DNA from: Lytechinus pictus
Lineage: Eukaryota
Assembly (NCBI RefSeq): GCF_037042905.1
Contig: NC_087245.1
Coordinates: 29,202,001-29,266,000, forward strand
DNA length: 64,000 bases
Reading direction: 5' to 3'
Position 1 is the stretch's first letter; the number at the start of each line of letters is the position of its first letter. A program made the position numbers and the translations under genes. Below the pieces are notes generated by a model. The model had not been told where the DNA came from. It did no database searches and saw only the letters and a list, made by a program, of their open reading frames with translations. Shown piece after piece: positions 3,701-55,090 of the stretch.

Positions 3701-4009
3701 GATAGAATAGTGACCTAGGGTCTGTTTACGGATTTCAATGTAACAGAAGTTGTGCATGTTCAATTGTCGGCAATCTCGACTTGATTCCTTCGTAATACTA
3801 CACAATTCCTTTTATTTCATATCCAAAGAATTTAAGAATTCATTCGAGTCGAGTTGATATCATTTTTTTCTCCATAATCACAACATAAATTTGTGTAAAG
3901 TATGTGCACCTTCAAAGAGGCTAGTATAACGACTCAACTCAACAGTATTTCATCATTGTTTACAAGCATATACGTTAGAAATGATACGTTGAAAAGCCTT
4001 AGATATATT

Positions 4010-4053
<44 letters not shown>

Positions 4054-7000
4054 ACTCAATGCCGTCTATCATTCTTCTTCCAATCCCCAGGCACCTCTGT
4101 TCTTTCTTGACAACCCAGGTGATAGCACGGATGATGACCGATTAGGCATCGAGCATGCGCAGTTGGTTCCACAAAATGGCCCCGCCCACCAACACGTTGC
4201 TACCACCCGAGTCTGCTACGGCTGCTCTCTCAGCAAACTACCACAGTAAGTTATGTTAAGTACATTATTTTATATTGATTTAGTTTCGAGCAAATTTCAA
4301 CCTGTAGTATTATACACGTATTATGTTTAAAGGGATCATTTTCGAAGTAAAGTTCTTATAAATATATTTGTAGTATCTTACGTTCTAAAGTTTTGACTGG
4401 ACTAGATTAATAATTATTCTAGGAATAAGTCATTTGCATATTCATATAATAGTCAGAAACGACATTGTTCATGATAAAATGCGACTAGACAATGATGGTC
4501 TCTCTAGTTGATCCTTTCATCTTGTCATCATTTTTTGCTCAATCTCTTATATTCTTGTATACAGTTTATATATATTTAGTTAGGATGTTTTAAAGTTCCA
4601 TCTACTTAATGAGGTGGCGAGACACTCTATCTTAAGTCGACTTATTAACTTTATAAGTTAAATGTATGGCGACATTTTTTCTCTCACTTTGTCGACTTCT
4701 AAAAAGTGACATGATACTATATTGACAATGTATCTTTCGAATGCTCAGACGACTTTCAATAAAGTTACCTGTCGTCATTGTGACATTTCTTGCTTATTCG
4801 ACTTTGTAAGGTAACTTAATATGTCGCCACTAACTTAGGGTTGATAAGTAGACACAAATCTAACTAGTTCACTTCATAATTTGTCTTGTTTTATCCATAT
4901 ATGTTTGATTTTCTGTATTTGTATTTTAGTGTTTTCTTGTTTACTTTCCTTCCATACTTAAACTGTTTTTTGTTTTTTTCTGGTATCTTTGTCTGGTCGA
5001 TTTTACTTTTCAGCTTGATTTAATTAACTTTGTGTATTCTTATCATCATTCTGTTTTAGGTCCAGTTCAAATCTACTCGACTTTTCTCATTCTTTATATT
5101 TGATTTGTTTTGAATTTCCATTTTCTTTGTTTTACACCTTTTTTATTTTTTTATTCTAGGTCTCTTTCAGCTTGATTCAATTAACTTTGTGTATTCTTAT
5201 TATCATTCTGTTTTAGGTCTAGTTCAAATCTACTCGACTTTTCTCCTTCTTTATATTTTGATTTGTTATGAATATCCATTTTCTTTGTTTTACACTTTTT
5301 TTTATTCTAGGTCTCTTTTCTACCATGACTAACCATCTATCTTTATTTCACCAGCTCAGGAAGATCAAGCTGAAGGCCCTCAAGACCTCTTTTCACCAGG
5401 ACAATTACAGATTTTATTCCCTTAATCGCATTATACCCACAGGCCTCCAACTTCATTGCACTCCCGGTCTCGGTACGCTCACACCTGAACTTCGCAAACG
5501 ATGGAACCAGACCTTACATGGAGCTTCAGTTCGATTAATTAACATCCTCTCTGAACAGTGTATTGCTTCTCTTGATTCTTTTTCAGCTGACATCAGTAGC
5601 CTGGAAGACGAACTACGTTCTTGCTGTACCCAAACCCAATGGCTTCAGTATAATGATGAAATTGAATCTGATCTCTCTAAACACAGGTCTCTCCTCACTG
5701 AACGCAGGAACAAGAAAATAGGCAACCTCACAAAGAAGCGACAACGGTCAAACAGATTTAGACGACATACCAACAACAATGATGTATCCCCCCATTTGGT
5801 TGTTAATCTCTCATCCTCCCCTCTCTCCCAAGCAGAAACCTCTCTTCTCTCTAAAGGTCTCAAGTTTTGCCCCACGCCACCAGAAGTTGAACAGATAGCT
5901 CTCAGCCAAGACCTCTCTACATTCTATCGCAGGATACGTCTCAAAGAGTTCTTTTTAGATGCACCCCCTTCTGATCCCGAGCCCTTCTACAAGAAAAGCA
6001 CATGGATTCCACCTAAGAATAGAGTTCCTTCCCTTGAAACTTACATCCAAGCTGTCTCATCCCAAGTTCGCTCCACAGATACCCTCGACACCAGAGCACA
6101 TGACAACCTTCCTCGAGAAGAACGCCAGGCTCTCTCATCACTCAAAAACAGGTCCGACATCATCATCAAGCCTGCAGACAAAGGATCAGCCGTCGTTGTT
6201 ATGGACCGCCAGCAGTACATCGATGAAGCCATGAAACATCTCAATAATCGATCTCACTATGCACTCCTCGATTCTGACCCTACTTGTAATTTCTCCCTAC
6301 AGATCCAATCGACACTGAATGACATGAAAGAACGCGAGTATCTCTCTGAGAAGGCCCACAAATTTCTCTCCCCTACTAATGCTAAACCTGCCCGCTTCTA
6401 TCTCCTCCCGAAGATCCACAAACCTGGCAACCCCGGTCGACCCATCCTCTCAGGAAATGGTTCCTCAACAGAGAACATCTCCCTTTTTGTTGATTACCAC
6501 ATTAAGCCCCTTGTCTCACGTGCACCCTCTTACATCCACGACACTCCAGACTTTCTCAGGAAACTAAATGACATCAAGGACCAGATACCCGAGACTGCGA
6601 TCATCGGCACTTTCGATGTTTCTTCACTGTACACCAGCATTCCCCACGACGAAGGTATCCAAGCATCATGTGAAGCCTTGGCCGCCAGTGGCCATTCCAG
6701 TCCCCCCATATCCGATATCAAATCTCTGATGTCTCATGTACTAACAAAAAACAACTTCACATTCATGGGCAAGCACTACCTACAGATATTCGGTACAGCA
6801 ATGGGCACCCGGATGGCTCCTTCATTCGCCTGTCTCTTCATGACGAAGCTGGAACAGCAGATGTTAGATTCAGCCCCCTGTCGCCCATGGATTTGGTGGC
6901 GTTACATAGACGACATTTTCTTCATCTGGACCAGGGATGAAGACAGCCTCCATACATTCATTGACCACATCAATTCCTTCCACAGGACCATCCAATTCAC

Positions 7001-10000
7001 TTCTGATTTCTCCCAACAGGAAACCCACTTCCTTGATGTTACAGTCCAGAAAAAGTCTAATGGTATCACCACTACCCTATACTCTAAACCCACAGATACC
7101 CACCAGTACCTCCACTCATCCAGCTGCCACCCCCGTCACTGCAAAACCGGCATCGCTTACAGTCAAGCTCTCAGACTTCGCCGTATCTGCTCCGAGGACC
7201 CTGATTTTTCCTTCCATGCCAGGAATCTGCAGAAACATCTCTGTGCTAGGGGCCACGGGGCCAGGGCAGTCCAACTGGCAATTAACAAAGTTCGTTCTCT
7301 CCCCAGATCTGAAGTTCTCAAACCAAAAAGTGACAAGGAGACCACCGACAGAATACCGCTTGTGACCACCTTCCATCCCAATCTACCCCCTCTCCGCAAA
7401 ATCCTGTTTGATAACCACCACATTTTACACACTTCTGATCGTCTCCAACAGGCCGTTCCCGATACTCCCCTTCTAGCATACCGACGCCCACCGAATCTCA
7501 GGGACCTCATTGTTCGTGCTGAAGTGCCCTCCCTCACTAACCATTCTTCTCCCATACAGCATGGCACCTTCAAATGCACCAGCAACAGGTGCATCATATG
7601 TGAAATACACCTTCACGAGGGCGATACTTTCACCAGCAACTCTACCAGCCTGTCTCACCAAATCAAGGGCAACATCACATGCACTACCACTAATGTTGTA
7701 TATCTCATCACTTGCAGAGTTTGTAGGGTACAATACATAGGGGAAACCAAGACCACACTCAAGAAACGATTCTACGGGCACAGATCCACCGTCAACACAG
7801 CAAAGCTGGACACTCCAGTTGGCCGCCATTTTAACCTCCCCAACCACTCCATCACTGACATGATGCTACAGGGCATCGAATCTTTAGGTACCCGTCCTGA
7901 CTCAGTCCGTACTAGCAGGGAGAAGCTCTGGATGAGACGACTTCGCACCACCCAACCTCATGGCCTGAACATCCAAGAGGGGAACGACTGATTTTTCTTT
8001 CCTATCCACTTTCAATTTATATATACATATAATTTTTCCCCTCAGCTCTTTTGAATAGTTACATTATAGTTTCTTACTCTACTTTCCTCCCATATCTCAT
8101 ACAAGCTCAGCTCCAATTTTTCCTTCCTTATTCAGGCGATATAATAATTATTATATATATATATATATATTTGTTTTTTCTCCACTCACCTCTTTTAGAT
8201 TTACCACATTTGCTTATTTACATGTATACTATGGTTTCTTCATAATACACCCCCTCTCTTCTATATTTGCTTTTACCTTTTTAGGCAATTTGCTTCCTCT
8301 TTTTCACATATACAGATTTTTTTCTTTCCTACTATATAGTCTTATGTTTTTTCCCGTCACACCTAGCGGATTACCATATCAGTTACACCATATGTGTATA
8401 TATTTATATATTTTTTCATATACATTTCTTTTTTGGATATATTTATATACATATCACTTATAGATACATATTTACACTTACCTTCTTCTCTTAGTTTGTT
8501 TAATGCTTTATCATATATACTTATATGTCTTTTGCACATTATCAGTTGTTCCCCATTCTTTTTCTTCCTTTTTTTCCCCCCACTCCTATGCACCAGTTTA
8601 TTAAGCCTTTCTTTGTAACCTGTTTGACCCACCTCTCACTAATTCTCTAGTTATTCATCCCTCTATCACTGTTTTGTTCCAGATCCTGTTTGATGTTGCC
8701 TGCCTCATTATCTTAATCCCTCTTGGCCTTACTTACACTAACTTCCCTTTGTGTCTGCCTACTCCTTTTCTTTCATCCCCTTCACTAACCTGATTGGTCT
8801 TCTCTACTCACTAATGCCCCTTTTGTCTCCTTGTTTCTAGTGTTGCTGTAGCTTGTTTGTGGTCTATATTATGGTTGTTCCACTTTATATGTTTGTCATT
8901 TTGCCTCCGACGAAGATTCTGCTAGGATCGAAAGCTTAGGCCCCCTTTTTTACTTTATAGTTCACTTCATGTGTGTGTTTTTTTAAATATATTTTCAGTG
9001 TGCATGTGACGAAGCCACGTCGAGTAGGTGGTGGATACACCATGGTACGCCAAGCTGTCGAGCCTTACAGCGGAGACAAACACAAAAATGGCGGTTCGCC
9101 CCCACCCTCAACATATATATCAGGTATTACGTCATACTCGCATAAATCAATACCTTTCATTTCCATACAATCATGGCTGAAGTATGAGTTCATTTTGTAT
9201 ACAATTACTCAACCTCTTGAATGTACATTCTTGGGTATGTCGTTTCACATATCATTCCATTCACTTAACACGTAAACCTACTTCAGAATGTATCATTTCT
9301 AGTATCTATACCATAGCTAGCTTTTTATTAGATTAAAACTACACATATCATTTCATGCCTATGTTTCTATCCATGTTATGTTGTACACATCGAGATTCTC
9401 TTCCATGAATAAACATAGTTATTCCAACTCTTCAATGTTCAAACGAATCACATTACGTTCTCCTCCAGGAAAAAAAATCATCGCTTCCTCTGTTACTCAG
9501 TTCTACATCTGACTTCTCTTTTCCCATTATATACATATTTTTCACTCAATATTGTTTCCAGAAAAGAATTCTCCCGTGCTCTCTTATTTCTCCGCGTCCA
9601 TTATCATCTCAACATCCCATCCATTCTATTTTCTCCTCTCACCTATGCCATAAATCATATCTAAACCCCATCTAAAGATGACATGTCTTCAGACGATGAG
9701 GACATCGAAAGCCACTTCGATGCCGTGATCGACGAAGAAGAAAGGGGGATTTTAGATTACATCAATGTCGCAAAGCTGGATGAGCCAACGCTCCCGCTCC
9801 CGTCAATCCCGCGGGAGAAACCACTCCCGATCCCACTTTGTATCATGGAAAAGATCAAAGCTAAAGATGTAAAGGCAGTCAGCTTGCATGAACGTAAGTA
9901 TTTCAACATGTTCAAGTGGCTGCAATGAACGGGGAAATTGTAGGCTCAAAGTGCCAAATCATTAAAGCACAGATGGGGCATTCAAAAAAAGATTGATCTT

Positions 10001-48459: not shown

Positions 48460-51400
48460 TCATATGGATGTATTTCGTACAGAGGTCGTCGTCGTCCTAT
48501 CCTTGATCCGCTGAGAGGAGCCATGCAGGCTGGTACCCGACGAAACCTTGCCCATCACTAGGCCACGCCACAGATCGAAGACTCTGCGGGTAGCAGCGAA
48601 AGCCAGAAATATGTAAACTCCTTGGAGTGAGTTGATGATGATAAAAACATACCAGACAGCTTGCTGTTTGCTGAAAGCAGCTATGAAGCCGAACATCCAT
48701 GTGAAGCCCATGAGTGAAGAGATCTTTAGTAAAGAGGATGAAATATGACTTGATCAGGGTGGTGTTTCACATCTGACCAATGCTGTCATGCCTTTTATAC
48801 CGCGCGCAACTAGGCATTTAAGTGAGACTCTAAGTCATACTTAAATATTTGTGAAACACCCCCCTGGTTACAGAACGACACTCATCCCATGCAAAAAAAT
48901 CCCATTACTTCACTCTAGGTCACCATCAATGTGGCCCCTCTCCAATTAAAAAGGAGTCGCAACAAGACATTCAACATGCATACAAAAAAAAACTTGCAGA
49001 ACCATGCAAATCCTAAAACAAAAGCCAGTAACTTCTAGTTATACGTTTTCGCGTAACAAACAGTTTGGCATACTTTTGTTTTTTATTATTTTGAATTCGA
49101 ACGTTTGATACATTAAGAGAGAAGTAAAAATATACATACTCTACACAAGGAACATGTTTGTATCCCCCCTCACACATTTTTTGTCAAGACCCATGTTTTT
49201 TTACAGCATGGATAATGGCATTTTCATCTTGGTATATTCCTACCTTAACGGCAATTTTGAAGAGTTCCTGGTGGTCCTTCTGGTTTTCTGTTCCCTCTTG
49301 CAAGGTCTTCCTTTCCCTCTTGCTCTTCAATATGCCACGCATCGTATCCAAGAAACAGGAGAAATTGAACGCCAGCAACACAAGGACTGGGACGCCGAAT
49401 GCTATGAGGTTAGCTTGCCCTCCGCCAATCCAACATGTTTGTTCATCGCCGTAATGCAAATCAATGCCTTCTACGAAGAACATCAGGGCCAGACAGGTAG
49501 CCACAATCAGCAGAGGCAACCCTGCGGCTAATGATAAGTAAAATATGAGGACTTTGCGATTTGTTGTCAATACCCTGATCGTCTTGCTGAATCCAAAGGT
49601 TCGACGGAGATCGTATGCGATTGAAGAAGACAGGGTGAATGTAGTCAACCATAAGAAGTGCGATATTGCCGCTAGAACGCTGCACAGGCGTTCAGACACC
49701 GAGCTCGCCATACCGCCAAACAAGAGTAGGCACTGTGCCACTAGGAGGGTGCCACAAAAGATCATGATGAGCTGGTTGCTGACGAGCCGACGAAGAGATG
49801 GAAACGTGATGTAACAGACGAGCGTTGTGAATAGCGACACTAGTGACAGGGTTGTGCCTACAAGGCTAAGGGTTGTTTGTATGGACGAGTAGTAGAAGAA
49901 AAAGTCCTGCGTTGTTTCATTAAACGTGCCATTTTGACTCAGGAACTGACACACTCGGATCGTGTCACTATCAAGTAAAACGTATTCGCCAGGTGAAATG
50001 ACATCACCAGATGGCACGTATTTCAACATGCCACTGTCTCCAAGACGGATAAACAGACTGATGTTAAATACGTAGCTGGGACATAAGAGCTCGTCGGTCG
50101 CGGGGATACATCTGAACGTTGACATGTTCTCAGTGGTATCATTTCTATTGGGTATAAAGTTATAACTTGCTGTAAATACTTTAAATCCGTAAGTGGAACG
50201 TATGTTTGGGGCCGTGTTGAAGGGTTGCTGGTCGCCTCTCGGGGCAGAATTATTTCTTAGATCCGTAAAATTTGTACAGATACAGTCACCATTACCAAGC
50301 AGTGCACATCTACTTGATATGGAAAAAGAGGAGATTCGACACTCGGTGTTGTTTGAAGCGTTAAGAGATAAATCAGTAATCATGCTACTTATGTCGTCGA
50401 AATCAGAATCAAGGCATTTTTGGTTTAATTGCCATATGAGAACTGTTTTGTACTGACCACCAAAATCATTCTCTTCGCATTCTATCAAAGTTTGGTTTTT
50501 CATAGTGATCAGTAACCGCGCGAAATTACAACTTTCATGTATCAAATGTAGACTTTGGCACAGTCCTTGGTCACTTGTAATCATAGTAGCCGTGACCACT
50601 TTGCTTTCGTATGATTCCAGGAGACGGCAAACTGAATCATCTGCTGAGACATCTTTGGCACATTCATCTCCGATCATTTCGTAGCCATCAGAACATGATA
50701 GTCTAAGACATGAGCCAATGTATGGATCGAAAACCTCTCCTGACTGACACGCAACTGTTGTTTCAGAAATAACCGTGTTTTCTTGAACTACTTTGATCCC
50801 ACTCTCAGATGAAAAATCAAAGAGGATGGACAAGGGACTTATAAACGATACAGTTCCAAATCCAGGTCCTCCAGAACATTCAGGGGGACACATTCGTCGA
50901 CCGGGCGGAAACTGTCCGACGTTGCAGGCGTAACAAACAGGGTTTTTATACGAAACACAGTCTCCATATCTATTCTCCAGGATAATATGCGCGCTAAAAG
51001 ACGCGCATGCCAACTGAAGTGCCATGTCAGAGAGGGGTGGACATTTTTCTACGTAGTTTACGGAATCCCCAATGCATATTCTCGCCGCTGTTTCCTCTGA
51101 AGAAGGAACCACGGAAAATAGACATAACATGTCACGAACTATTTCATCTACTGTTCGCGAGTGGTTTTTCAGGTCTTCAACGACATCATCAGGACAGTGA
51201 AGTAATACCTTCCACGGTGTTAGTTTTAAGAGTTCCACTCCGTTACAAATCGCGCAGTATACATTCCTATAGCTTAATATATCATCCAGAGAAAGTGGAA
51301 TATACTCATAATTGAGTGATCCTAAATGAGCAGATGGGGATTCACATTTCTCCCTCATTTGATCGCTAACAGATGCATCAGAACATTTTGAGATGAGATA

Positions 51401-52757
51401 GTAATAGGACGAACTTGGAGTTTTTTCTATTCTTTCACAGCTAAAGTAAGAACGGTCGTATCCGTACAAAGTGGAATTGTTGCTGGATTCTCTTGGGTGA
51501 TCTTTGGACGCAGCCTTAGGGCAGCAGTCACCGAAGAACTGACAAAATTCATCACAAGAACATCCTCGATTACCATCCTCATTTACCATACAAGATTTTT
51601 CTGGACAACTGTGCCGGTCGGGGCAAATCGGAATCGTCAAATTTCCTATCGTGACATTCAATGGACCCTCGGATAAATCTGCAGTTGGAGAAAATGAACG
51701 CAGAATTGTTGAAATGAAGTGATTGGTAAAGTCCAGTTATTTATTGTTGTTAACATTTGTTGAACGAGTCACCCTCGTGAATCCACTGTATTAGCATAAT
51801 CATTATCATTAAGATCACTACAGCCACTATTGTTATCCTCCCCGTCGTCTGCGGACAGTCATGCACTTACAAGGCTTTTATCTACATGACCATGATCATC
51901 TCGAGATTAAATACTCCTCATCCTCCTCCTTCTACTACTCCTGCTGCATGCTACTACCACTACTACTACTATCATAAATTACTGCCAGCACTTCTTCTTC
52001 CACTGATCATGCTGCAGGGCCCTAGGAACTATTTTTTGACTGGGGGTGCTGATGTCAATTTGACAAAAAAAAGGTCATTTTCGTCCCGAGAAATTTGACG
52101 AGCAAAAAAAATGGGTTTCTGAAAAAGAAATGTTGGTCATTTTGGGTACATTTCTCAATTTTGTCATACCGTCCAGAAAAAATAGGGGTGTTGCCTTTGG
52201 AAAATAATCCACGCTGCATCCCCAAGGAAAAGTTTAGGGGTGCTTCAGCAACCCCAGCACACCCACTTCATAGGGCCATGTGATGCTGCCACTAATATGA
52301 AAAAAAAACCAGCTGTTCTTGTATTATATGACATAGTGATATAACGTCTCCATACGCTTCGAGAGGACTTTGTTGCTGCTGCTGCTGCAGCTGCTACTGC
52401 TATTAGTACCAAATGATCAGTGTGAGAGCTTTAACCCGCAACATATTATATTCTTTATTAATTACAAAAAATAAAAATGATTTCATTGTATTTTCTAATT
52501 CCTAGGAAAAAGAGAAGTGTCGATGCTAATTTATTTATTCGAGAAAAATAATAACACTACTTACTTTGAGGTACCTGATGTGATTGTTCTCCACAATCTA
52601 TAGCTTGACTATTCATGTCCAGCCCAGTTGAGGACAGAGATGATTCCGTGGTCTCTTGGGATACAGGAGTCACCATCGTTGACGCGATGAGAGTCCTCGT
52701 CGTCAATAACAGGACTATCACATTCCGGATGGTAGGTAGATGTTTACTCCAGGCCAT
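48460..52757 (-). CDS. Class B (secretin/adhesion/Methuselah-like) 7TM GPCR with N-terminal somatomedin-B-like and Cys-rich ectodomain, about 963 aa
   Basis: Exons (-): 52757-52565 (signal-peptide-like), 51678-49244, 48723-48460, phase-consistent (2892 nt). SMB-like CSCDEFCQFFGDCC; 7tm_2 motifs LSLVSL..TL..Y, CSVLAAISHFLWL, YGDEQTCWI, FGVPV, LMGFTWMFGF, NSLQGVYIF. Confidence 0.92.
52015..52280. mobile_element. hAT-type MITE in GPCR intron 1
   Basis: CAGGGCCCTAGGAA ... TTCATAGGGCCATG; near-perfect 8-bp TSD TCATGCTG / TGATGCTG. Confidence 0.7.
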
Positions 52758-55090
52758 TATCACTCTGAAATTCTTGTAGAATTAACGAATAATTTGCATA
52801 TATTGAAGAAATGTGATTGAAACTATCCTGATAACGTTTTTTTTTTAAATCATTATGTTCACTGCAGCATTTAATTAGCAGCATTGGGTATTTCCTGACA
52901 CTATTCAAGTACTTAACAGCAAAATCAGAAATACTGTCCAATCTTGGATATCACGAAGTCTGTAAAAGGGTACGTCATCGAATCATTATGAGGTTGGATC
53001 TCGACATCATCTTCAGTCCTAACAAAGTGGGAAGGGGCATTCACATGAAAATGGGCCAACTGTCTTTCCTTCATACGGGATTCTGTGACTGGAATACTTA
53101 TGTTTAATATATAAATCAATAAAAACAATATTTTCATTCTTGAATGAAATATCCCTCCCGTTTTGATGATGATAACAATACTAAATTACATTGAGTGAAA
53201 CATACCTTCAAAAGCGGTGCTCTTCTTCTACATTCTCTGCATTCAAATCGATGAAGAAGTTTAACTGATAGACCACTGAGCAAGATTATAATTTATAATT
53301 AAACACCGGGAAATCTGCAACGGTACAATGTTTCATCGATTGACAAGAAGGGAAATCTGATATATTTAAGTAATTTCTAAGAATGGATTCTCAAATTCTT
53401 TTAAGAAGAAAAAAACCTGAGAGGCTCCACTGTATGTCGGTCGCTATAACTGCTTTCGAAGTTTAATGCAGGCCATCATCAACAAACCGCCTTTTAATAA
53501 GCATCGGGGTTTCAGAGGCAAACGTTGTAAATCAACTGCCGACATGGCAGCGCCGCGACGTGTCGTTCCGCCTGCTATGATTACTTTCATTGAGATGCAT
53601 CAGCCTTGTGAACTTCCAAATCATTTCAAGTATAAACATCGATATGTTAACCCATAATTTATGCATAATCAGGGAAACGAAGCAGCGATGGTAAGCTCGA
53701 TGACCAATAGGCGGCTAGAATGTTCAACTACAGTATGTTACCAACCTGAAGTGTATTCGTTATTTATGCCCAGTATATTATAGTCACCTGTCTACATGGT
53801 ATATATTTCTTTAATATTTCAAAATGAACATAAAACATTTGCCAGTTTGGAGGGGTTTTTAAATTGTGGAAAGAGTCATATATATCTTGATCAAGGTTAT
53901 TTTGGTGTTTTTAATGCCATCAAACTATTGTGATGTTTAGTTCCTTCTCAATTATTATTTTCCTATACTAATTTATTTATTGTTGTGGTGGCTGTCAAGA
54001 CAAACCCTCTAGGGTTTTATACAGAAGCCATTTTCCATTTTTGATCATGTAATTTGATCTAAATCATTGTATTTTGATGACCATATTTTTACCTGTTGAT
54101 GTAACTTTTTATATAGATAGAATGGAATAAAATCATATTGAATTGATTGAACTGATTGAAAAATATACTTCATGCCATGCTATCATCGTTTTATCTTTAA
54201 TAACTTGAAACATATTATTTTAACAATGACGCCCAGTCATTAAGAATGTCAATGAAAGCCATTAAAAAACAAAATCTTAACACGCTAAGGCAAGGTAAGA
54301 GGTAAGGTGAATGTTAAGAACACTTTACTGTAAAAACGTTGTTTAAAATTTAAAGCGCGTTGTTTAAGTTTAAGCCCGCCACTTTAACAACTACTGCTTA
54401 AACTTTTAAACAACTGTTTAAACCTTTTAAACAACTGTTAAAACTTTTGTTTTAAGTTGTTAAAAAAGTTTTAACAACTTGTTGTTAGAGTGAAAGGTTA
54501 TACATCGTCCTATTTTATTTCTATGAATTTCACGTTTCGAAGGTTGCTAGGTATCTAAAAACGCTGCACTACCAATGATGAAGAAAGGAAAAAACTATAA
54601 ATTAATGCGACCAGTATTATATTTACCGTAAGCTCTGGCCGTAATGTAATCTATTCCTCTCTATTTATATGGGTTAATTCTGCGACAATAATTTTTTTAA
54701 ACACCGGAATTGAACCTCCATGGAAACAGCAACGCGATATGGCACCAGGGGAAAGATGGCATTCATGCTGCTTATTTTTAATCAAACAGAGACATCTTCT
54801 CGAATCTCTGAGGACCGGGTTTCAAAGTAAGGCTTTCTATGCCCTACAGTTCAATTATGGTAAAGATTGAAATATGACGGTGGTGGTAAGCAATTGTTTA
54901 CACATTCATCGAATTTTATCATCTGCCCTCGCATCAACGAAATGGATGATTTAATGCAAGACGAAGAAGAATGGGCGAAGGAGAGGAGATGGTTATTCAG
55001 TAACACGGTTTGTTACGTTTTCCTTTTCCATGACCTTCTTGACATTTGATGGTTCGTTGAAAATGTTATTAGACCATACAGGAGCATAGC

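Follow-up and report, generated by a model that had tools for sequence, protein, structure and literature searches.

A minimal hammerhead motif with a C4 core at the 3' end of an intronic Penelope-like element in Lytechinus pictus

An intron of the sea urchin Lytechinus pictus harbours, close to its 3' splice site, a 39-nt motif that in all probability represents the 3'-terminal minimal hammerhead ribozyme (min-HHR) of a young Penelope-like element (PLE) inserted in sense orientation. The C at position 4 of its core is shared across the sub-family, and the module is likely to be an inert passenger at this site. PLE min-HHR modules are already a known kind: what sets this one apart is the C4 core shared by a Lytechinus sub-family. 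Judged from sequence, membership of the hammerhead class by descent is clear, whereas membership by consensus fails at one base, C4. The locus on its own is an ordinary intronic transposon insertion, with no evidence for regulation of the host gene. All coordinates refer to the window, that is, the entire 64-kb stretch of DNA that was analysed.

Anatomy of the motif, the element and the host intron

The minimal type-I hammerhead module spans 8903–8941 on the plus strand and is delineated by sequence, descriptor, alignment, covariation and a covariance model. Read directly, its 39 nt open with GCCT (8903–8906), which forms the 4 bp of helix I with AGGC (8938–8941). The core CCGACGA (8907–8913) carries C at position 4 (8908) as well as at N7, and is followed by a bulged, unpaired A (8914) located between core A9 and G10.1. 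Helix II pairs GATTCT (8915–8920) with AGGATC (8924–8929) across a GCT loop: it consists of 6 bp, including one U-G wobble, and is closed by G8915–C8929, the G10.1–C11.1 pair. GAAA (8930–8933) leads into G15.2 and C16.2 (8934–8935), then U16.1 (8936) and H17, which is U at 8937, and the predicted scissile bond lies at 8937/8938. The hammerhead core consensus (C3 U4 G5 A6 N7 G8 A9, G12 A13 A14, A15.1–U16.1, H17) is matched except at position 4. The helices, core, C4, extra A and location described in the initial annotation were all found. AAGCTT, put forward there as the palindrome, was rejected for helix III, as it would pair A14 with H17, a pair that does not occur in hammerheads; the palindrome required by the fold is AGCU (15.1–16.1, 8933–8936).

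The extra A before helix II had been regarded as a departure from the norm: it is present, but as a characteristic feature of the metazoan PLE min-HHRs already described rather than as a variant. Cervera & de la Peña (2014, PMC4209133) describe these ribozymes as having an extra unpaired nucleotide, a short helix I, a long helix II and a palindromic helix III. The likeness extends to the type-I arrangement with 4–5 bp in helix I and 6–8 bp in helix II, the unpaired nucleotide between A9 and G10.1 together with the G10.1–C11.1 pair, the reduction of helix III to a palindromic 15.2–16.2, and a location in the terminal repeat (pLTR) region of elements encoding reverse transcriptase (RT) and GIY-YIG endonuclease, with many solo copies. 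The U3–A8 core covariation reported in the same source is seen here in relatives L003–L010. The difference lies in C4 for U4, fixed in one sea-urchin sub-family; the comparison is one of text, and PMC4209133 mentions 'exceptional core changes'.

The element itself is a full-length PLE of 4080 bp (4878–8957, plus strand), a single unit bounded by a target-site duplication (TSD) and devoid of a 5' pLTR or hammerhead. The 13-bp TSD was read directly as TAGTTCACTTCAT at 4865–4877 and is repeated identically at 8958–8970, 28 nt upstream of the acceptor. The 5' UTR contains two ~157-bp tandem repeats (5008–5318, plus strand; blastn self-match, 90.7%), a repeat present in ~4 units in the Lytechinus variegatus locus L012. 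The intact ORF (5325–7991, plus strand) encodes an RT and GIY-YIG endonuclease of 888 aa from an ATG at 5325, the mechanically called frame beginning at 5268. Pfam recognizes RVT_1 (E 1.3e-8) and, weakly and under the curated cut-off, GIY-YIG (E 0.0015); the protein is 65–88% identical to echinoderm PLE proteins with PF00078 and, in part, PF01541. The motif is found 912 nt past the stop codon and 16 nt before the TSD-defined 3' end, and a 20-nt terminal segment (8938–8957, plus strand), established by comparison of copy ends, separates the predicted cut from the end of the insertion. The ORF, the TSD and this 16-nt distance confirm the earlier placement of the motif at a PLE 3' end. The 5' end of the element aligns to position 3997 of L012, ~110 nt past the upstream hammerhead of the tandem. 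The signature of PLE insertion is thus complete, with a TSD, a defined 3' end with optional tail, and tandem copies elsewhere. The family is young and active: its ORF has remained intact, over 2995 nt of the ORF region an RNA contig shows 3 substitutions and one gap, and word depth in the DNA rises from 25 on the ORF to 127–144 on the 3' module.

The entire PLE is contained, in sense orientation, in a GT..AG host intron of 4753 nt (4246–8998, plus strand). A 1322-nt RNA contig (run X1) joins the upstream coding exon, 4091–4245, straight to the downstream one, 8999–9123, both on the plus strand, and a donor GT follows at 9124–9125. This spliced joint, 4245 to 8999, bears out the proposal that the motif lies on the sense strand of the host intron, ending 57 nt before the acceptor at 8998. 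Frame 0 is open through both exons (93 aa), and a Pfam search of the two-exon peptide returned no family; two raw RNA runs have zero depth on these exons. The larger ORFs of the window were considered as the host gene and dismissed: the one gene they yielded, of the 7tm_2 family, is unrelated and lies on the opposite strand. The amniote intronic hammerheads HH9 and HH10 (de la Peña & García-Robles 2010) are reportedly canonical and efficient, show deep conservation at orthologous positions and are recognized by Rfam. The present motif resembles them in its position on the host intron sense strand; unlike them, it belongs to a recent transposon insertion and has a minimal variant core.

Recognition, covariation and the spread of C4

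A relaxed minimal-hammerhead descriptor, which accepted either pyrimidine (C or U) at position 4, three types of 3–8 pair, 0–1 inserted nucleotides and a helix II of 4–9 bp, matched once in the 64-kb window and in 0 of 300 dinucleotide shuffles. A search with hammerhead models, advocated in the initial annotation, was blank in Rfam, where neither the gathering threshold nor E ≤ 10 gave a hammerhead match at the motif (Hammerhead_1, _3, _II, HH9, HH10). A covariance model built for this analysis, trained solely on U4 relatives outside Lytechinus, scored 8900–8944 at 65.9 bits (E ~1e-14). As Rfam likewise misses relatives with a canonical core (Diadema, Tara contigs), the lack of a match is to be put down to the minimal architecture rather than to C4: the Rfam hammerhead models do not cover min-HHRs. 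Rfam gave no histone stem-loop at this locus either, and none was visible on inspection. A weak covariance-model match at 53486–53522 (minus strand) lacks helix II and GAAA and was set aside as chance. Neither a further module nor a 5' pLTR was found within the window, which contains a single copy of the PLE, and a motif scan of viral contigs gave 0 matches.

Could the motif itself be a chance hammerhead-like string, unrelated to ribozymes? The blank result in Rfam would suit such a reading, as would a fold no more stable than that of shuffled sequences (z = +0.56), a measure that says little about a minimal motif. Its probability is nevertheless vanishingly small in view of the shuffle result for the descriptor, the covariance-model score, the equal invisibility of canonical-core relatives to Rfam, and the positional homologs in four echinoderm genera, which display covariation.

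These homologs adjoin relatives of the element in Lytechinus, Diadema, Asterias and Apostichopus, as well as in contigs from marine metagenomes. L002 has the organization pLTR-ORF-pLTR, Diadema L015 consists of three tandem units 4.07 kb apart, and motif homologs adjoin PLE ORFs also in L012 and L016–L023. Tandem copies occur in L012 and L015, and L013 holds two C4 modules 189 nt apart. The unpaired A equivalent to 8914 is invariant in 17 of 17 aligned relatives, and 98.6% of helix cells are paired, in part by construction for those relatives that were recovered with the helix II pattern or with a descriptor demanding pairing. Both-sided changes affect helix I (C-G/U-A), the core 3–8 pair (C-G, U-A, A-U), helix II (U-A/C-G) and 15.2–16.2 (GC/CG), and the covariation score was reached by 0 of 500 shuffles. 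Relatives with ACGU instead of AGCU preserve the palindrome through such a both-sided change. Covariation in helices I and II among family copies, whose absence, together with a lack of cleavage in dimeric constructs, the initial annotation would have held against its own proposal, is therefore present. The comparative record indicates that the hammerhead structure is under selection in the family, and selection acting on the element would maintain the fold.

Judged from assembled copies and one high-depth contig, C4 is found in the window copy, in all five L. variegatus copies and in one Asterias copy; the contig, 304 nt of DNA with a word depth of 131, is identical across the motif, C4 included. 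The relatives that retain U4 are Diadema, L001/L004, L002, L003–L010, L016–L021 and Apostichopus, the closest metagenome relatives being among the U4 carriers. To the question of whether U4>C is family-wide the answer is that the change is not confined to this copy and is fixed in the Lytechinus-lineage sub-family, but is missing from Diadema, sea-cucumber and most metagenome relatives. Within the C4 lineage variation falls at the free N7, at H17 and at a G-U wobble in helix I. The module would go back to a hammerhead that PLEs have preserved in sea urchins, starfish and sea cucumbers; a master copy in the Lytechinus lineage probably fixed U4>C, and the sub-family would have gone on amplifying with C4. 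One of its members presumably entered the intron of the sea-urchin gene in the sense direction, 28 nt ahead of the 3' splice site.

The same core change has a natural precedent in a replicating RNA lineage. Perreault et al. (2011, PMC3088659) relate, after Ambrós & Flores (1998), that a natural viroid hammerhead with U4C is less active in vitro, yet biologically viable. That hammerhead has full helices and tertiary contacts, whereas the window motif is minimal, dimer-dependent and part of a retrotransposon. That the viroid variant stayed infectious suggests that C4 could be tolerated in a min-HHR scaffold.

Cleavage of the element RNA and of the host intron

Four independent retrocopies (the window element, L013, a minus-strand copy in L012, and L004) end 20–22 nt past the predicted cut, and one retrocopy ends at ~+75–80 nt from it. 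As retrocopies extend 20–22 nt beyond the cut, the RNA that served as template would have been uncut at the hammerhead; copy ends further suggest that cDNA synthesis starts 20–22 nt downstream of the scissile bond. In RNA reads pooled over all family copies and both orientations, at a depth of ~500, ends do not accumulate at 8937/8938 in a test that registers a site once a fifth or more of the molecules start or stop there. A back-joint, as expected of circular RNA, was not seen in the RNA reads. Much of the family RNA is apparently of the opposite strand, an assignment that carries some uncertainty.

Published biochemistry adds to this picture. According to PMC3088659, U4C "considerably decreases activity in vitro". 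Single mutants of the CUGA turn all display low activity. PLE min-HHRs are poor cutters even as cis dimers, according to PMC4209133, and ribozyme-dead mutants of the Anolis PLE still insert in vitro (PMC11167929).

It is possible, though doubtful, that the C4 hammerhead still works as a dimer. Tandem or closely spaced modules, as in L012 and L013, would pair via helix III and cut, and the reaction would trim read-through transcripts or generate unit-length, possibly circular, RNA; the window copy would then be silent only because it is single. The family-wide covariation of the catalytic 3–8 pair and the preserved 15.2–16.2 palindrome speak for this reading, as do the confinement of C4-lineage changes to N7, H17 and the helix I wobble, the C4 modules in L013 and the L012 tandem, the viability of the viroid variant (PMC3088659) and the dimer model published for PLE hammerheads (PMC4209133 and PMC6765202). 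It is countered by the 20–22 nt retained beyond the cut in retrocopies, the absence of RNA read ends at the site at the one-fifth threshold, the poor cutting of PLE min-HHR dimers (PMC4209133), the normal in vitro insertion of ribozyme-dead mutants (PMC11167929) and the low activity of CUGA-turn mutants. As far as comparison of sequences goes, the conserved 3–8 pair and helix III palindrome point to catalysis or dimerisation being important for the family, which fits uneasily with a purely structural role of the hammerhead.

The fold may serve dimer-dependent processing of tandem transcripts, provide a 3' structure used by the RT/endonuclease, or do both. Tentatively, the C4 lineage might amplify with a crippled U-turn and keep its hammerhead mainly as a folded, perhaps dimeric, handle for the RT/endonuclease, with self-cleavage being dispensable in vivo. 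This reading brings together the intact ORF, the high copy number, the conservation of the other core bases, the 3–8 pair and the palindrome, and a cDNA start that would always lie 20–22 nt beyond the scissile bond.

For a lone copy the energetics are unfavourable. Dimerisation yields a net gain of −2.5 kcal/mol for the 4-bp AGCU helix and at most −4.3 kcal/mol for a 6-bp AAGCUU helix; the computed Kd implied for an intermolecular helix of 4–6 bp is ~1–20 mM. The initial annotation anticipated that a lone monomer would barely cut, and the analysis agrees: little or no cutting would be expected without a stable helix III and with a U-turn weakened by C4. Whether low cutting also explains host tolerance is less straightforward, as the insertion is young and selection may have lacked the time to act.

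The initial annotation went further and envisaged a switch dependent on transposon RNA: the intronic monomer would be activated in trans by family RNA through the palindromic helix III, and cleavage of the intron would report the level of that RNA. The motif does occupy the sense strand of a genuine intron, module RNA is abundant (depth ~290, versus 1–10 on the PLE ORF) and dimeric hammerheads exist (PMC4209133 and PMC6765202). The switch is nonetheless very improbable and finds no support. Pairing over 4–6 bp is millimolar-weak, with a Kd far above cellular RNA concentrations; cis dimers are already feeble (PMC4209133), and C4 adds to the weakness. Opposite-strand family RNA would form a duplex of at least 50 bp over the module, masking rather than activating it. 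Moreover, the 64-kb window lacks a second module, the cut site shows no pile-up of read ends at the one-fifth threshold, and ribozyme-bearing PLE derivatives are reported to be depleted from vertebrate introns. The apparent tolerance may simply reflect too little time for selection, given the perfect TSD and intact ORF. The preferred reading is that of a module essentially inert in host pre-mRNA, being a lone monomer with C4, no stable helix III and no partner within 64 kb: a passenger, as expected, and not a regulator.

Known systems and significance

PMC6765202 cites Lünse, Weinberg & Breaker (RNA Biol 2017) for small hammerheads that accompany PLEs and reportedly cut when dimeric; the window motif resembles these in the PLE association, the missing or short stem III and the dependence on dimers. 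A further counterpart is Poseidon of Anolis (PAc), a PLE for which internal RT initiation and a 'tail' have been described (Frangieh et al. 2024, PMC11167929). As in PAc, the hammerhead lies upstream of RT start sites, copies terminate at set positions and form two classes, tailed and tailless, and RNA-seq ends are absent at the cut site, catalysis being unnecessary for insertion of PAc in vitro. Unlike in PAc, the RT start is deduced here solely from copy ends, at +20–22 and ~+75–80 nt; the PAc hammerhead, in turn, overlaps the ORF start and its RT start sites are further off, a layout not shared by the window element (PMC11167929).

Analogously to non-LTR retrozymes, which are non-autonomous PLE derivatives (Cervera & de la Peña 2020, PMC7229834; Li et al. 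2026, bioRxiv 10.64898/2026.07.22.740005), the terminal module greatly outnumbers the ORF and short solo copies occur. The window copy differs in being an autonomous full-length element and not a tandem retrozyme, and retrozymes have canonical type-I hammerheads and give rise to circular RNAs, in contrast with the lack of a back-joint here (PMC7229834; 10.64898/2026.07.22.740005).

A strictly conserved core base, U4, can evidently be replaced, and the replacement fixed, in a retrotransposon lineage that is still active, a result that bears on the purpose of PLE hammerheads. The 3' end shared by independent retrocopies, 20–22 nt past the cut, speaks for transposition of an uncut RNA, in agreement with the in vitro work on the Anolis PLE. 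Lytechinus C4 and Diadema U4, set in an otherwise identical 39-nt scaffold, constitute an inexpensive test pair. Should the hammerhead indeed be kept mainly as an RNA handle, the Lytechinus sub-family would represent a natural experiment on the need of PLEs for their ribozyme.

The element and its host intron

An open reading frame at 5325–7991 (mechanical ORF from 5268) matches RVT_1 and, weakly, GIY-YIG, and is 65–88% identical to proteins of Lytechinus variegatus, Diadema antillarum, Asterias amurensis and Apostichopus japonicus, which places the source of the window among sea urchins close to Lytechinus. The Penelope-like element (PLE) that harbours it measures 4080 bp (4878–8957) and is bounded by a perfect 13-bp duplication (TSD), TAGTTCACTTCAT, at 4865–4877 and 8958–8970; neither a second PLE copy nor a 5′ pLTR was found within the 64-kb window, which is free of N runs. 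The 5′ UTR contains two units of a ∼157-bp tandem repeat (5008–5318) as against ∼4 in an L. variegatus contig (L012, 3997–4814), and the repeat number therefore differs among elements. Microsatellites of the (TA)n type lie in the PLE 3′ UTR (8139–8174) and in host sequence (4003–4051) upstream of the exon at 4091–4245.

A 1322-nt RNA contig from run X1 is spliced straight from this exon (4091–4245) onto 8999–9123, skipping 4753 nt with GT..AG borders on the + strand, and the two exons are in a common open frame. The PLE thus sits in sense orientation within a real intron. The initial annotation had placed a hammerhead on the sense strand of a host intron, and the spliced contig bears this out: measured back from the acceptor at 8998, the end of the motif is 57 nt and the predicted cut 61 nt away, and the PLE 3′ end follows 16 nt after the motif. 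Insertion took place 28 nt before the 3′ splice site. A branch-point-like CTTCAT forms part of the TSD, whose downstream copy keeps the final 41 nt of the intron whole, this motif included, and may preserve the branch site and the polypyrimidine tract. Elsewhere in the window, an 825-aa single-exon ORF at 49184–51661 (−) with a secretin-family 7TM domain (7tm_2, E 6e-14) looks like an adhesion-GPCR-like gene, unrelated to the hammerhead.

Comparative support for a minimal hammerhead

Direct reading of 8903–8941 (+) agrees with the motif as initially annotated. In hammerhead numbering, helix I pairs GCCT (8903–8906) with AGGC (8938–8941); the core from C3 to A9, CCGACGA (8907–8913), has C in place of U at position 4 (8908) and is followed by an unpaired A (8914). 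Helix II (GATTCT/AGGATC, loop GCU) has 6 bp, with G10.1–C11.1 as first pair and one U–G wobble. G12, A13, A14 and A15.1 (8930–8933), G15.2 and C16.2 (8934–8935), U16.1 (8936) and H17, here U (8937), lead to the predicted cut at the 8937/8938 bond. A palindrome is present as had been proposed, but dimerization needs AGCU (15.1–16.1) rather than the 6-nt AAGCTT, because in the latter A14 would pair with H17, outside the hammerhead fold.

The motif is a known PLE minimal hammerhead. Metazoan PLE hammerheads as described by Cervera & de la Peña (2014, PMC4209133) have a helix I of 4–5 bp, a helix II of 6–8 bp, G10.1–C11.1, a palindromic 15.2–16.2 and U3–A8 covariation; solo copies are numerous, and activity in vitro is very low, dimers included. 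Against that description the build is identical and C4 is the sole departure. The A before helix II, initially listed as a variant, is instead a family hallmark, since the published motifs conserve a nucleotide between 9 and 10.1.

The same module occurs on contigs encoding close relatives of the PLE ORF: on both sides of the ORF in L002, upstream of it in L001, between two tandem units in L. variegatus L012, in a tandem array of three modules spaced 4.07 kb in Diadema (L015), and about 250–310 nt past the stop codon in the P0010 family (L016–L021), Asterias (L022) and Apostichopus (L023). A metagenome scan with the helix II pattern added nine further loci, and every module found sits where a PLE terminal region is expected. 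On metagenome contig L011 (3366–3451) two modules stand head-to-head a few bases apart, one of them lacking 2 nt where helix I meets the core; the pair looks like inverted PLE ends.

Covariation in helices I and II, the absence of which the initial annotation had made part of its refuting condition, is present. Standard pairs occupy 98.6% of cells in a 17-sequence alignment, and slid registers reduce pairing to 18–55%. Both-sided changes comprise C–G to U–A in helix I, U–A to C–G in helix II, C–G, U–A and A–U at the core tertiary pair 3–8, and GC to CG in the 15.2–16.2 palindrome. The covariation score was reached by none of 500 column shuffles, although relatedness inflates the counts and several sequences were retrieved by a pattern or descriptor that presupposes pairing; the metagenome pattern did not cover helix I or positions 3 and 8.

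A loose descriptor (C/U at position 4; 3–8 pair C–G, U–A or A–U; 0–1 inserted nt; helix I 4 bp; helix II 4–9 bp with a 3–8-nt loop; palindromic helix III 0–6 nt) matched once in the 64-kb window and never in 300 dinucleotide-preserving shuffles, and a 24-nt piece of the motif has a single occurrence in the window even when three mismatches are tolerated. Rfam returned no hammerhead for the motif, either at gathering thresholds or at E≤10. Relatives with a canonical core, CUGACGA in Diadema and CUGAUGA on a Tara contig, escaped Rfam as well, and its silence is therefore due to the minimal architecture, not to C4. Trained solely on ten U4 relatives from outside Lytechinus, a covariance model recovered 8900–8944 at 65.9 bits (E about 1e-14); its second-best match in the window (E 0.76) is not a hammerhead. 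The fold is present in the MFE structure, whose stability does not exceed that of shuffles (z = +0.56): support for it is comparative, not thermodynamic.

Distribution and expected effect of C4

U4 forms part of the CUGA U-turn. In a viroid, a natural variant with U4C “considerably decreases activity in vitro” and is still infectious, as reported by Perreault et al. (2011, PMC3088659), and in comprehensive mutagenesis every single mutant of the CUGA turn was low in activity (PMC9901934). C4 is thus expected to weaken cutting further in a scaffold already poor at it.

The initial annotation had asked whether the change is family-wide. It is lineage-wide rather than family-wide: C4 is found in the window, in all five L. 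variegatus copies found (three on L012, two on L013) and in a 304-nt DNA contig (8664–8949; word depth 131.5) from organism B. This contig departs from the window in two places, an 18-nt insertion at 8723 and one substitution that the variant table puts at 8945, and therefore carries C4. Most other relatives have U4, namely Diadema, the closest metagenome relatives L001 and L004, L002, L003–L010, L016–L021 and Apostichopus. In Asterias amurensis (L022, 6103–6141) a single copy combines C4 with U3–A8 (TCGAGAA core), and may represent a second, independent U4>C. Members of the C4 lineage differ at N7 (A/C), at H17 (U/C) and by a G–U wobble in helix I, the exception being the clearly decayed copy L012c. 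Several features mark the sub-family as young: an intact ORF, a perfect TSD, an RNA contig that differs from the window ORF region by three substitutions and one gap in 2995 nt, and a DNA word depth of 25 for the ORF versus 127–144 for the 3′ module.

Transcripts, copy ends and cleavage

Raw reads from two rRNA-depleted RNA runs bearing the same species label were mapped onto 4000–9300. Depth is 1–10 on the ORF versus about 290 on 8779–8955, and zero on the host exons in both runs. Between 73 and 75% of mapped reads continue into unlike sequence, their loose ends gathering just before 8895–8905 and just after 8944–8949; as these ends flank the hammerhead, the block common to many transcripts is the hammerhead itself. 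Read starts or ends do not pile up at 8937/8938 at a threshold of one-fifth of local depth, which low-level cutting would escape. In the Anolis PLE, no RNA-seq ends occur at the cut site and ribozyme-dead mutants insert normally in vitro (Frangieh et al. 2024, PMC11167929).

At 7665–7914 reads carry 6–17 differences, clustered as A>G when the first mate is on the minus strand and T>C when on the plus. ADAR-type hyper-editing of sense as well as antisense PLE transcripts would leave this pattern; diverged copies could mimic it. A few reads link 8722 to 8918 (195 nt skipped) or switch strand at 8724/8787, and the 18-nt insertion after 8723, which the organism B contig also has, is common in RNA reads; other copies of the family appear rearranged near 8722–8724.

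That RNA from other copies might pair with the intronic hammerhead and trigger its cleavage, as initially proposed, is very improbable. In a double hammerhead the helix I strands are only swapped between molecules, and the net gain of dimerization is therefore the shared helix III. Computed energies of −2.5 kcal/mol for AGCU/AGCU and −4.3 kcal/mol for AAGCUU, with its non-native A14–U17 pairs, translate into a Kd between about 20 mM and 1 mM, which exceeds the concentrations of RNA in cells by many orders of magnitude. Reads occur in both mate orientations (about 2:1), and opposite-strand family RNA, if these carry their usual meaning, would form a long duplex over the module instead. No cis partner module lies within 64 kb. 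Host tolerance, earlier ascribed to a barely cutting monomer, needs no special explanation, because the insertion is recent and has left the final 41 nt of the intron intact. A recent preprint reports that ribozyme-bearing PLE derivatives are depleted from vertebrate introns, a depletion that would be in keeping with mild selection against them rather than with co-option. A regulatory interpretation of the intronic hammerhead is unsupported.

Sequence downstream of the cut site was aligned across tandem and solo copies. Homology to the tandem unit is lost 20–22 nt after the cut in four independent insertions (the window, L013, the L012 minus-strand copy and L004), whereas one copy, L012c, extends to about +75–80; the stretches concerned are window 8938–8957, L013 13628–13650, L004 2795–2820 and L012 1141–1225. 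These two classes of 3′ end recall the optional “tail” signature of PLEs and the two RT start sites located internally in the Anolis PLE (PMC11167929). Every retrocopy retains sequence past the scissile bond, so the reverse-transcribed RNA was uncut at the hammerhead. Relative to a tandem unit, the PLE 5′ end in the window (4878) falls about 110 nt beyond the upstream hammerhead, a position that fits a linear transcript begun inside the terminal region. What is new here is that an active sub-family carries U4>C as a lineage-fixed change and that its cDNA start is sharply defined, 20–22 nt past the cut; both bear on whether the PLE hammerhead acts through cleavage or offers the transposition machinery a folded handle.
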